From NCBI GenBank assembly GCA_020891255.1, contig BQFW01000010.1, forward strand, positions 248,001 to 312,000: a DNA stretch of 64,000 nucleotides, read 5' to 3'. Positions 34,151-46,130 of the stretch are shown here, piece after piece; position 1 is the first letter of the stretch; each line of letters starts with the position of its first letter. The position numbers and the translations under genes were made by a program. The notes below the pieces were generated by a model. It saw only the letters and a program-made list of their open reading frames with translations. It did no database searches and was not told where the DNA came from. The DNA is from Entomortierella parvispora E1425 (lineage: Eukaryota > Fungi > Mortierellomycota).

Positions 34151-34903
34151 TCAGTCTTGGGTGCGGTACCATAGTATCCTGTCCCAAGTCCTGTTGTCGT
34201 CAGATAAAGTTTTCTCCTTGGCAGCGCTCGCTCCTACATCGCCTCCGAAATAGCTAAGAACGATCTCCATAACTCGGGGCTCAGCCAGGCTGCCTCTTAG
34301 GGTCGCTACTTCTGGGATTTCCGCTAATGGCGGAAAGCTCACTTTCCACTCGCCTATGTTACGATAAGAATATATAGTTGTGTTGTAGAAAAAGGAACTT
34401 TTGGTCTTTGTCTCCTTCCAAGGAGCCGAATGGTCTTCACACTTGTCGATTGAATTCCTGTCTCGGCAGAGTCGACATCTCCGGATGGTCCAGCTCCAAT
34501 TGATCAATTCCCCAACGTGCTCGACCCCCGTCGCTGAGGAGATGGTGTGAAGCCTCTGAAGGACTGGCAACGGTAGGTGGGATCTGTTTGGCTCTTGGAA
34601 GTTTGAGAGTCGGAAACAGACCTCGCAGAGATGACGGCTTATAACGCAGATATACACCATATAACTCTTAAAGTGGGCTTGTCCTCGGAGAAGGCGAAGT
34701 GGTTTCATGTCCGGATGGGTGAACTCATAGATTTGTTTCCAGAAAGGTAAGGAGCCAATGATGAGGTGAAGGGTTCGGCTGACTCTGGAGAGGCGCGAGA
34801 GCTGGGAGGGATAGAGTCGCGCAAAGATCATTAGCCATATCTCGGGAGGGATTTGCTTATCGACACACTGCCTCTGTCGTTGACTGAAGTCGTCCGCGGA
34901 CAT
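34151..34903 (-). CDS. F-box + CxxC..CxxC protein, array-2 copy A (most divergent)
   Basis: Start MSADDFSQ. IPPEIWLMIFARLYPSQLSRLSRVS F-box; HLCEVC and WTIRRCRLCR; FGGDVG..AAK..TWDRILWY tail. Confidence 0.85.
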   Translation of the reverse strand: MSADDFSQRQRQCVDKQIPPEIWLMIFARLYPSQLSRLSRVSRTLHLIIGSLPFWKQIYEFTHPDMKPLRLLRGQAHFKSYMVYICVISRHLCEVCFRLSNFQEPNRSHLPLPVLQRLHTISSATGVEHVGELINWSWTIRRCRLCRDRNSIDKCEDHSAPWKETKTKSSFFYNTTIYSYRNIGEWKVSFPPLAEIPEVATLRGSLAEPRVMEIVLSYFGGDVGASAAKEKTLSDDNRTWDRILWYRTQD

Positions 34904-35246
34904 TCTCCTGTTGGTGAGTGAGGTCGAGATGCAGGGGGAAGGAGGGAGGGAGAAAGGGGCATGGGTTGTGGGAACAATTGATTGCCAAGCCTCCCGCACA
35001 TTCCCACCCATGTGACGTCGTTGTGACGCAAAGGAAAAATGGGATGTGTGCCGTTGAAAAATGGCGAAATGGCCTGGGTCGATCTGTGATCGTTTCATGG
35101 TCAGCAGGGAAGGGATGGAGGATCCAAAGCGGTCTTTTGGGCTCGTTCTCTTCACTCGTGTCTCTCTTTCTCTCTCTCTCTTTGTCTCTCTCTTTCTCTA
35201 CAACTCCCTCTTTTAGTCACAGACACACTCCCATCCATCCACAATC

Positions 35247-37200
35247 ATGTCTATCTCCAAAATCCACGCTCGCCAGATCTTTGACTCTCGCGGTAACCCA
35301 ACCGTCGAGGTCGAGGTCACCACCCCCCAAGGTACTCATCACTCTCCGCGCATTTCTTTGCTTCTGGAGCTCTTCCCTCCCGCTGTTGCAGGCTGACTAA
35401 GCCTCTTTCCATCTCCTCTCTTCTTCAGGTGTCTTCCGCGCCGGCGTCCCCTCCGGCGCCTCAACTGGTAGCCACGAGGCTCACGAGCTCCGTGATGGCG
35501 ACATGAGCGCCTACGGGGGTAAAGGTACGCAACGATAGAGTTACTCTCCACTTCCTTTTAACAGGCAGGGAATGATATCACAACAGTCAACAGGAAAGGG
35601 ATGGTCGTGTGCTTGTGATCCTTGCAGAACAAACAAACAATTAATTTGCTCACAAGCAAACAAGCATGTACCCTGCCTGCACTTGCGTTTTTGGACTGAT
35701 TGATCCTCTTCGTTGTTATCATCATCATCCAACAGGTGTCTCTAAGGCTATAGAGAACGTGATCAAGAAACTCGGGCCCGCCTTGATCGCTGCCAATATC
35801 AATGTCAAGGACCAGATCCTTGTGGATGAGTTCCTCATCAAGCTGGACGGAACTGAAAACAAAACAAAGTATGGTGCCAATGCCATCCTCGGCATCTCTA
35901 TGGCTGTCCTCAAGGCTGGAGCCGCCTCCAAGGGTGTTCCTCTCTACCGTCACATTGCCGATTTAGCGGGATACAGCGGTAAAAAGATTGTCATGCCCGT
36001 CCCCTCCTTCAATGTCATCAACGGAGGTTCCCACGCCGGCAATAAGCTCGCCATGCAAGAGTTCATGATCATGCCCACCGGCGCAAAGTCCTTTGCTGAG
36101 GCTATGAAGATGGGCTCAGAAGTTTACCACTGCCTGAAATCCACCATCAAGAAGAAATACGGCCAGGATGCCACCAACGTCGGAGATGAGGGTGGATTTG
36201 CTCCCAACATTCAAGACGGCTTTGAGGCTCTCGAGCTTTTGAAAACCGCCATTGCAGACGCCGGCTATACTGGTAAGGTCAAGATCGGTATGGACCCTGC
36301 TTCCTCCGAGTTCTTCAAGAATGGTATGTACGACATGGACTTCAAAACGGCTCATTCCGATGCCTCCAAGCGCCTGAGTGGCGATCAGCTCTGCCAGTTG
36401 TACAAGGAGTTCATTGCCAACTACCCTATTGTCTTTATTGAGGACCCCTTTGATCAGGACGACTGGCCCTCTTGGTCCAATATGACCGCCTCGACCCATA
36501 TCCAAATCATCGGTGATGACTTGCTTTGCACCAACCTTAACCGTATCAAACCCGCCATTGAGAAGAAAGCCTGCAATGCCTTGTTGCTCAAGGTCAACCA
36601 GATAGGAACCATCACCGAGGCTATCAAGGTAAACCATCTTTCAACCCTCCTCTCGCTTCTTTCTCTCTTATCCTCAAAACAATCATTTTTTGTCGCCATC
36701 AATTGAGTTTGGCGAAGGAGGCCTGTGCCCTCAGATCATGTCCACCACTCACATTTTTAAAGTTGCTGAGCTCCAAACCGCTGTATTGACAAACTGCTTT
36801 TTCATCCGTGCATATCTATGGTGAAGGCTGCCCTCTTCGCTCAGCAATCCGGATGGGGCGTCATGGTCTCTCACCGTTCCGGTGAGACCGAGGACACCAC
36901 CATCGCTGATCTCGTTGTTGGTATCCGCTGTGGTCAGATCAAGACGGGTGCTCCCTGCCGGTACGTGTGTTTTGATGTTGGCGCTTTATTTGCTGGATCT
37001 ACCGCGACTCTTTTTTTTTTTTTTTTTTTTTTTTTTTCAAGAGGACAAAAAGTGGCTGACTTCAGTTTCTATTTCTTCATTTGTGCTTCTGTAGATCTGA
37101 GCGCTTGGCCAAGTACAACCAGATGCTCCGCATCGAGGAGGAACTCAATGGTGACTCTATCTTTGCCGGTGAGAACTTCCATCAGGCACATCTCTTGTAA
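35247..37200 (+). CDS. ENO: Enolase (exons 35247-35331, 35429-35524, 35736-36628, 36827-36960, 37095-37200)
   Basis: [86 protein letters not shown]. Confidence 0.96.
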
Positions 37201-37274
37201 ATAGTGTACATGTACTTCAATACTTGAACGTCCTCATCAACAAAAATGAAAAATAAAAAATTGGGAACATCCCC

Positions 37275-37593
37275 TCAATCTTGGTCCTCATACCACAAAA
37301 TCCTGGACCATTTTTTTGCGCCGTATTTCTTCGTTTCGTATTCTGCAGCCTCGAATCTGGCGGGTCCGCCCAAATGCTTGTTCTCATCAACGATAACATC
37401 GTACTAGCTGGTAACGCCAGTTGCTAGACCTGTCAGGGCAAAAAGTCGAGTCCAGATGGGCAGAGAGGCAACGACGGAGAAGAAGTGCTGACGCGTGAGA
37501 GGCGCGACAATTGAGATGGGTATAGATCCGAAAAGATCCTTCCCCAAAGCTCCACCGGGAGATGCTTTCGGTTGATATCCGTCTCGCCGACAT
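37275..37593 (-). pseudogene. Array-2 copy B, frameshifted and internally deleted
   Basis: Frameshifted F-box N-terminus joined almost directly to the tail KHLGGPARFEAAEYETKKYGAKKWSRILWYEDQD*; the zinc-finger core is missing. Confidence 0.8.
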
Positions 37594-44705: not shown

Positions 44706-44913
44706 GAGAGAGAAAGGGAAGGGGCTTCGAGTGTTTGCTGCTTTTTATTTAATAAGTGATTTTTTATTGCGCTTTGGTTCTTCTTACACGCAGTCTGTGC
44801 CACCGTGGTAATAATATCCTCCGCTGCAATAGTTCAATTGCGATCTGCACATCTGACTCGTGTCTTCATGTGCCCTTGGCAACATGGCCCCCATGATCGG
44901 CGGTCAATCTCCG

Positions 44914-45657
44914 TTAGTCTTGGCACTGGTACCATAATATCCTGGTCCAGGTTTTTGCATCGTAGTCGCGAATTGAGCTCTTTGCAGCTTCAACGCCTAC
45001 TGGGCCACCAAGTTGTCCGTTCATATAGCTTATCAATTGTGGTTCTAGAATCTGCCTAGTCAGGCACACATTGTTGATATCCACTACAATGTTGGTATAT
45101 TTTAATTGAGGATACGTCCTCATCCAATCTTCAAGCCTCCATAGTGTAGTCTCATTTCGGTAAGGCCCCGCAGGTGGCAAGCACTCGGGGACTACATATG
45201 TTGAAGTAGCATCCCGGCATCCAAGGCACTTTCGAATCCGCCAATTGAGATTGATCATGTTGCCCACGATATTCCCGCTGTCCACTTTGCCTGTGGTGAT
45301 AGTCGTCCTAACTGGGGTGCTGGGCAGTGTGACCAAAACTGGCAACGGCAGCTTGGCAGAGTGTTCTTGTCGGAAGGGTATCAACTTTTGACATGCCTCA
45401 CAAAAGTGCAAACTGATGGCGCACATATAGATCATGCAACAAATGGACGAGGACCGTCCTTGAAGGAGCCGGAGCGCCTTGTTGGGGTGGGTCAACTCAA
45501 AGAGTCGAATCCAGATAGGCAACGAAGCGACGATGGCATAGAGAGTCTTGCTGACGCGTGAGAGGCGGGACAGTTGAGACGGGTACAGATCCGAAAAGAT
45601 CTTTTCCCAGATCTCTACAGGGACACGCTTGTCGTTGGATAACCGTTTTCCTGTCAT
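44914..45657 (-). CDS. F-box + CxxC..CxxC protein, array-2 copy J (H-like)
   Basis: Start MTGKRLS at 45657; intact. Six differences from H in the first 162 aa. Confidence 0.9.
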   Translation of the reverse strand: MTGKRLSNDKRVPVEIWEKIFSDLYPSQLSRLSRVSKTLYAIVASLPIWIRLFELTHPNKALRLLQGRSSSICCMIYMCAISLHFCEACQKLIPFRQEHSAKLPLPVLVTLPSTPVRTTITTGKVDSGNIVGNMINLNWRIRKCLGCRDATSTYVVPECLPPAGPYRNETTLWRLEDWMRTYPQLKYTNIVVDINNVCLTRQILEPQLISYMNGQLGGPVGVEAAKSSIRDYDAKTWTRILWYQCQD

Positions 45658-45892
45658 GTGAAGAACAAAGAGTCGCAACGAGGGAAGGTCCGGAAACAAA
45701 AAAAAGTGCTTTTTTTTCCTGCTGCGCCACTTGTTCACAGAGCCAGGAACCAGTTATTTGGGTTTGATGAAAAAAAAAAAAAAAAAAAAAAAAAACGCGT
45801 GGTTTTTACTTTTTAGGAGAGCGTGTCCATCGATCAACAGTTTAAACAAAAAAGGGTGAACCGCGTAAGTCCACGACGAACGAGATGCATGT

Positions 45893-46130
45893 TCAATCCT
45901 GGTCCTGATAGTATACGAACCTGGACCAAGTTTTAGCATCGTACTTTTGTGTCGAGTTCTTGGCAGCCAGGACGCCGACAGGGCCGCCGCCAAAATATCG
46001 TTCCATAGACCTCATGACAGTTGATTTTGAAAGGATGGTATTCGAGGGCATTTCAGCCAGGTCCCTGACATGAATCACTACAATCAAAACCAAACTTGGA
46101 GAAACAGGATGTGGATCTTGGAGGCATGGC
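45893..46130 (-). pseudogene. Array-2 copy K, 3' fragment only
   Basis: MERYFGGGPVGVLAAKNSTQKYDAKTWSRFVYYQDQD* with no F-box or zinc finger upstream. Confidence 0.75.

Follow-up and report, generated by a model that had tools for sequence, protein, structure and literature searches.

Positions 34151-46130 of the stretch analyzed here, a window of 64,000 nucleotides from the soil fungus Entomortierella parvispora E1425 (Mortierellaceae; G000:C10:248001-312000; assembly of 38.9 Mb in 20 contigs), hold eleven minus-strand copies of one gene family, which were located by a six-frame hidden Markov model (HMM) scan of the window together with a listing of its open reading frames (ORFs). The copies are probably a lineage-specific tandem expansion of small, intronless substrate receptors of SCF (Skp1-cullin-F-box) ubiquitin ligases, in which the F-box is followed by a zinc-stabilized recognition domain derived from the DNA-repair protein XPA. 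In particular, we conclude that the C-terminal half of these proteins descends from the DNA-binding domain of XPA and that the array copies are a derived form of it. This descent is argued from ORFs with an XPA_C domain in the same genome and from profile matches of the family as a whole; the Z scores of the fold searches are consistent with it.

The F-box half and the XPA-like half

Copy c7 of the array serves as reference. L032 and L033, named below, are two long F-box ORFs of the same genome, and omega is the ratio of nonsynonymous to synonymous substitution rates (dN/dS).

42022-42753, minus strand: c7, intact, 243 amino acids; reference for the structure model and the residue numbering
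42595-42723, minus strand: F-box of c7 (residues 11-53); Pfam PF12937, E 1.3e-10; superposes on the F-boxes of Skp2 and Cdc4
42310-42498, minus strand: predicted C4 zinc site of c7 (C86, C89 ... C145, C148), with a long inserted loop
42121-42264, minus strand: variable segment of c7 (residues 164-211), a remodelled XPA_C core, as judged from entropy, omega of about 1 and alignment to the XPA_C of L032/L033 and Rad14

The first-pass annotation of this DNA had described the copies as F-box proteins. Each of the six intact copies exceeds the Pfam gathering threshold for PF12937/PF00646 (32-41 bits, cut-off 24.3; E 1e-8 to 1e-10), and a Pfam F-box match is present in 29 of 29 family members. Copy c7 was modelled with AlphaFold2 from the 29-sequence family alignment (predicted local distance difference test, pLDDT, 82; predicted template modelling score, pTM, 0.76). 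Its F-box superposes on that of Skp2 (1fs1) with a root-mean-square deviation of 1.0-1.5 Å over 35-41 residues and its N-terminus on Cdc4 (1nex) with Z 6.5 over 79 residues; when the whole model was compared with PDB using Foldseek, F-boxes were the sole matches. The F-box claim is thus confirmed by the Pfam scores and by superposition on Skp1-bound F-boxes. Three Skp1 loci are present in the genome, and the N-terminal F-box presumably docks on Skp1. Other matches were discarded: Imm49, SOCS-box and further Pfam hits of the array copies are noise (E > 0.01), the F-box alone being significant; a PDB sequence search with family profiles returned the FBXL5 F-box, chance “LGGPAG” matches to KPC beta-lactamases and nothing else; and the ESM Atlas matches (scores 0.78-0.82) are under the meaningful level.

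Downstream of the F-box, every intact copy carries four conserved cysteines (CxxC...CxxC) and a GG.VG...WY tail. In alignments of 29 and 105 family members, C86, C89, C145 and C148 show no or almost no variation, and the same is true family-wide of P104, R149 and G213/G214/G217. The cysteines are spaced CX2C-X55-CX2C in the array copies, with X31 in L032, and in profile-profile alignment the second CxxC falls on the second CxxC of the XPA zinc finger. We infer that the C-terminal half binds zinc through a C4 site. The motifs listed in the first-pass annotation (CExC, W.IR.C..CR and the GG...WY tail) are all there, but the histidine of its “H.CExC” is specific to the array and not conserved family-wide; that description also lacked a smaller variable patch, the second in the protein, at residues 121-130. 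Throughout the family, the order of domains is F-box, CxxC...CxxC, XPA_C-like core and GG.VG motif, as seen in three alignments.

The same genome provides the connection to XPA. A search of the whole genome with Pfam XPA_C yielded the true Rad14, which is a separate gene on contig 14 (G000:C14:1444086), and two long F-box ORFs, L032 (697 amino acids; 30.6 bits, cut-off 25) and L033 (682 amino acids; 18.9 bits, same cut-off). Both had already been matched by the array-family profile through their F-box, and their XPA_C stretch coincides with the variable cassette of the array copies. The array-family alignment matches L032 and L033 with hhalign probabilities of 98.3 % and 99.3 %, respectively, over 182-194 columns reaching from the F-box to GG.VG. 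The best bridge from the array family to XPA is L032 (L032:955-3048, minus strand; G000:C2, EMPS_01075), a single-copy long protein, conserved across Mortierellaceae, in which an F-box is combined with an XPA_C domain (above the Pfam cut-off) and with a long repeat tail rich in Ser and Gln.

Searching 1.84 billion representatives with a profile restricted to the C-terminal domain gave 273 cluster representatives at E ≤ 1e-3, 174 of them at E ≤ 1e-10. Among 105 sampled relatives, an F-box was found in 87 and XPA_C in 32 (best E 5.8e-10). Further, hhalign of the family alignment of 196 domains against 120 Rad14/XPA proteins gave a probability of 96.9 % (E 1.6e-10); the 101 matched columns begin at the second CxxC and take in XPA_C and the following helix. 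What had been noted as a loose resemblance to the XPA/Rad14 fold is therefore real homology at the family level, given the L032/L033 bridge, the relatives with XPA_C and the profile match. The first-pass annotation recognized no characterized family, and none matches; however, in a published XPA phylogeny an “F-box clade” with hits to XPA_N/XPA_C was removed as an outgroup and given no name, function or analysis (PMC10810185). Apart from this passing mention of the F-box and XPA combination, our literature search found no study of a clade of F-box proteins with an XPA-like domain.

Several results weigh against this interpretation. Pfam detects neither XPA_C nor XPA_N in the array copies or in the 29 family members. 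The own-genome profile reaches 74 % against the 120 Rad14/XPA proteins and 36 % against the single Rad14 sequence, the query in the latter case being a single-exon ORF (L031:1384-1935). Foldseek gave no match in PDB for a C-terminal-only structure model (pLDDT 77). In the fold search with this model, Rad14 5g32 ranked 2 of 48,161 chains (Z 3.8, 65 residues), and the same list contained 5lcl (Z 3.4), SLC30A9 2enk (rank 5, Z 3.6) and XPA 6j44/6ro4 (Z 3.0-3.1); the Rad14/XPA values of Z 2.5-3.8 are weak, as chance helical matches are common, and they would be no proof alone, although they agree with the sequence evidence. Concerning the array itself, the E1425 assembly is based on Nanopore reads with Illumina polishing (PMC8759367), and single frameshifts such as the one in the A7 run of copy c4 could be errors. 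Each broken copy has at least two lesions or large deletions, and only one c4 frameshift lies at a homopolymer (A7). In the alignment to Rad14/XPA, the “TKTE”, “YLLTD” and “NP...W..M.LY” blocks of XPA_C are replaced or shortened in the array copies.

Array layout, turnover and genomic setting

Besides c7, the locus comprises the following copies and features.

34151-34903, minus strand: c1, intact, 250 amino acids; older lineage, with the orthologue P0033 in a related fungus
35666-37204, plus strand: enolase paralog with introns, between c1 and c2; context, not a family member
37278-37573, minus strand: c2, relic with F-box pieces and tail; the middle (about residues 57-206) is deleted
37912-38631, minus strand: c3, intact, 239 amino acids
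38922-39646, minus strand: c4, disrupted close to the C-terminus by two frameshifts, of which the second lies at the A7 run
39905-40635, minus strand: c5, broken; the F-box contains a frameshift and the variable segment an in-frame stop
40946-41683, minus strand: c6, intact, 245 amino acids
43053-43787, minus strand: c8, intact, 244 amino acids
43340-43818 (c8) and partner 45210-45688 (c10), minus strand: c8/c10 gene-conversion tract
44092-44685, minus strand: c9, badly decayed, with several frameshifts and deletions; nearest relative c7
44914-45657, minus strand: c10, intact, 247 amino acids
45893-46057, minus strand: c11, fragment consisting of the tail alone, at the array's upstream end

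Six of the eleven copies are intact (239-250 amino acids) and five are decayed. The count of eleven given in the first-pass annotation was reproduced by the HMM scan, but c1 lies outside the contiguous array, behind the enolase gene, and forms its own, older orthologous lineage. The remaining copies, c2 to c11, make up a head-to-tail array of ten with a period of approximately 1.03 kb (898-1070 bp from start to start). Coding regions of the copies align well and the spacers between them are mostly unalignable. Retroposition was considered as a source of the intronless copies and rejected; the head-to-tail order, the regular period and the shared flanks point to unequal crossing-over instead. 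The pairs (c7,c8) and (c9,c10) represent a duplicated two-gene unit, the scaffolds of c7 and c9 being 82-93 % identical.

Copies c8 and c10 were compared along their whole units. Between about 30 nt before the ATG and about codon 150, 56-60 of 60 positions are identical (~99 %) and the synonymous divergence (dS) is 0.015-0.08, in contrast to a dS of 0.53 in the tail, a 3′ spacer with ~70-75 % identity and 50-75 % in the rest of the unit. Because of this near-identity next to a diverged tail and 3′ spacer, the tract is a recent gene conversion over the 5′ two-thirds of the gene, stopping at the border of the variable part.

The array also occurs beyond the sequenced strain. In a maximum likelihood (ML) tree, c3, c6, c7, c8 and c10 form one clade with the environmental sequences P0003 and P0005 (support 100/100), and c1 pairs with P0033 (100/100); the c1 lineage is intact in two organisms at ~73 % nucleotide identity. 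On contig L037 of a related fungus (JGI metagenome 3300029943), an intact copy of the array type, a copy with a frameshift and the c1 orthologue follow one another head to tail, and the enolase is absent between the c1 orthologue and the array copies. On L034 (Logan ERR15945747), from a related fungus, a broken copy adjoins an intact one. Since tandem copies including frameshifted ones occur on L037 and L034, both the array and its turnover are older than the split of these fungi.

At least 15 further full-length paralogs are encoded in the genome, most of them on contig 10 and others on contigs 1, 5, 9 and 12. Named relatives come from ten genera of Mortierellaceae (Entomortierella, Linnemannia, Mortierella, Podila, Gryganskiella, Haplosporangium, Actinomortierella, Benniella, Gamsiella and Dissophora) and, at E of about 1e-13, from the Mucorales Rhizomucor and Zychaea. 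The family is thus large in Mortierellaceae and extends to Mucorales. A literature search on F-box expansion in Mortierellaceae returned nothing relevant. The array is part of a very large F-box complement for a 39-Mb fungal genome: at least 150 sites lie above the Pfam cut-off (150 of 150 scored) among 532 first-look candidates, many of them in tandem clusters, e.g., C12:2558885-2578193.

Other F-box families are represented in the window by three ORFs: 21429-23519 (plus strand, 696 amino acids; 21.1 bits, just under the cut-off of 24.3), 48222-50363 (minus strand, 713 amino acids; 22.5 bits, likewise just under it) and 58172-61168 (minus strand, 998 amino acids; 44.2 bits against the same cut-off). 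For four consecutive minus-strand ORFs of about 600-650 amino acids (436-2310, 2504-4369, 4815-6779 and 7075-8865), Pfam gave no match at E ≤ 0.001; they may be another tandem family. An ordinary gene for NMD3, the 60S export adaptor, is located at 56276-57817 (plus strand), which places the array amid housekeeping genes rather than in a subtelomere. Another enolase of the genome, which scores better, is encoded on contig 13.

The variable segment and its interpretation

The first-pass annotation had proposed a conserved scaffold with one very variable segment, and column entropy bears this out: residues 164-211 show 1.7-2.2 bits, compared to 0.3-0.9 bits in the scaffold. Within the segment, W177, Y/F181, P182, Q183, L184, V/L204, L/M208 and L/F212 are kept as anchors, and the spacing of 204/208/212 corresponds to one face of a helix. 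Both the anchors and the segment length are maintained in 8 of 8 array-clade sequences, which come from at least two organisms. In the c7 model, residues 173-212 form helices (pLDDT ~87) and residues ~155-170 are of low confidence.

Substitution rates were estimated by ML codon fits (GY94+F3X4) on eight sequences, i.e., five array-clade copies and three environmental ones; 2dlnL is twice the log-likelihood difference from omega = 1.

Scaffold: omega 0.26, 2dlnL 216
Tail: omega 0.25, 2dlnL 38
Variable segment: omega 0.96, 2dlnL 0.06
Helical part of the variable segment: omega 1.31, 2dlnL 1.81, not significant

An omega significantly above 1 was found neither in the variable segment nor in its helical part, with eight sequences, low power and dS near saturation. 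Constraint on the segment is three to five times lower than on the rest, and its rate is indistinguishable from neutral; likewise, the orthologue pair c1/P0033 has omega 0.5-1.0 in the segment and 0.2-0.3 elsewhere. Pairwise NG86 (Nei-Gojobori) estimates of dN/dS (0.3-0.9) are unreliable, as dS is about 1 or undefined, and were superseded by the ML fits. The dN/dS check proposed with the first-pass annotation gave no support for a diversified recognition surface, no partition being significantly above 1. Of the two properties named there as telling against such a surface, disorder and dN/dS ≤ 1, the second is what we see, but low model confidence is confined to residues ~155-170. An omega of about 1 with invariant anchors inside the segment hints at, but does not test for, faster sites elsewhere in it, and dS is close to saturation.

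Taking these results together with the domain analysis, the F-box half would dock on Skp1, and the other half would be a recognition module made from the XPA/Rad14 DNA-binding domain, i.e., a C4 finger with a greatly lengthened loop, remodelled XPA_C helices and the GG.VG...WY helix. Shortening of the XPA_C core in the array copies, with loss of its hallmark motifs, has left a small helical unit in which the buried positions are retained and the others change at an approximately neutral rate. Most likely, the copies recognize different or loosely defined protein targets and not DNA, presumably through contacts of the variable face. The array itself evolves by unequal crossing-over, including that of the two-gene unit (c7,c8)/(c9,c10), by frequent gene death (5 of 11 copies) and by gene conversion that homogenizes the F-box/zinc-finger half.

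The neutral-like rate can also be read in a simpler way, which we consider possible though rather unlikely: after loss of XPA-type DNA binding, the segment would be merely an unconstrained in-frame spacer, and the copies would be redundant and drifting to pseudogenes. An omega indistinguishable from 1, the five dead copies, the low model confidence for the first ~15-18 residues of the segment and the fact that this region is the least conserved and most indel-prone family-wide would all be expected for a spacer. However, a spacer does not account for the maintenance of anchors and length in all eight array-clade sequences, for the purifying selection on the tail downstream (omega 0.25), for packed helices in the model of the segment or for a c1 lineage that has stayed intact in two organisms. 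The opposite reading, that diversifying selection acts on the segment as a recognition surface, with the array as a repertoire tracking fast-evolving non-self such as endobacterial, viral or transposon proteins, we regard as unlikely. It draws on a segment that is mostly folded (residues 173-212), on a hydrophobic pattern (204/208/212, W177 and YPQL) with almost free positions in between, on the higher omega that a value of about 1 including anchors implies for the other sites (1.31 in the helical part), on the high birth-and-death turnover and on the Burkholderiaceae-related endobacterium reported for the strain (PMC8759367). Nevertheless, no test gives an omega above 1 (2dlnL 0.06 and 1.81), the pairwise estimates remain at 0.3-0.9 with saturated dS, and the c1 orthologue pair does not exceed 1.0. 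An extension of this idea deserves still less credence, namely that the non-anchor positions of the XPA_C core are a diversifying binding face and that the arrays of Mortierellaceae constitute an innate, ubiquitin-based surveillance of fast-evolving targets, e.g., mobile-element proteins or those of the Burkholderiaceae-related endobacteria; if true, gene conversion would preserve the uniformity of the Skp1-docking half during divergence of the recognition half.

Very improbable, in our view, is a domain that has remained an XPA-like binder of DNA structures and directs SCF to chromatin or to DNA that is damaged or unusual. Its homology to the XPA DNA-binding domain, the basic C-terminal half of several distant paralogs (isoelectric point, pI, 9-10) and the bona fide XPA_C retained in the long paralog L032 are in keeping with DNA binding, but the array copies have lost the XPA_C signature blocks, score no XPA_C and are near neutral in charge (pI 5.3-8.7). 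Net charge or pI of the C-terminal half was dismissed as a discriminator, as the Rad14 segment of the genome itself has a net charge of 0. The preferred reading remains that of SCF receptors with an XPA-derived domain for protein targets. F-box proteins are defined by the target of their second domain, and here this second domain is a reused DNA-repair module. No form found so far in the genome is more derived or more amplified than the array in the window; with a constant scaffold and a variable surface, the copies form a natural series for asking what the XPA fold can become, and they provide an example of gene conversion limited to one half of a gene.

Comparison with known systems

With XPA/Rad14, the array proteins share the order of a four-cysteine zinc finger (predicted in the array), a helical/hairpin core and a long helix. 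In contrast to XPA, they have an F-box in place of the N-terminal partner-binding regions, the loop of the predicted zinc finger has about 55 residues instead of 17 (CX2C-X17-CX2C), and the XPA_C motifs and hairpin are lost to below Pfam thresholds. Further, the array proteins end directly after the domain, and they are not a single-copy orthologue, the true Rad14 lying elsewhere. The “F-box clade” of the published phylogeny has the same domain combination as L032, L033 and 32 of the 105 relatives (PMC10810185), whereas the array copies are short (~240 amino acids), tandemly amplified and without detectable XPA_C. A neighbouring outgroup clade in that phylogeny is the XPA-like domain of SLC30A9 (PMC10810185). 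This zinc transporter (2enk) likewise exemplifies the recruitment of an XPA-derived domain into an unrelated protein, but it has neither an F-box nor a tandem expansion, and the fold match to it is weak (Z 3.6).

Expanded F-box families are known from the F-box/FTH and FBA2 genes of C. elegans and from the FBA/Kelch F-box genes of plants, and positive selection has been reported for these nematode and plant families. The array differs from them in that its recognition domain is derived from XPA and omega in its variable segment is not significantly above 1. It has in common with them the tandem arrangement, the rapid birth and death of copies, the conserved F-box and a fast-evolving substrate-binding part. 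Thus, the array fits among the expanded families of F-box adaptors, as one with an unusual recognition domain.

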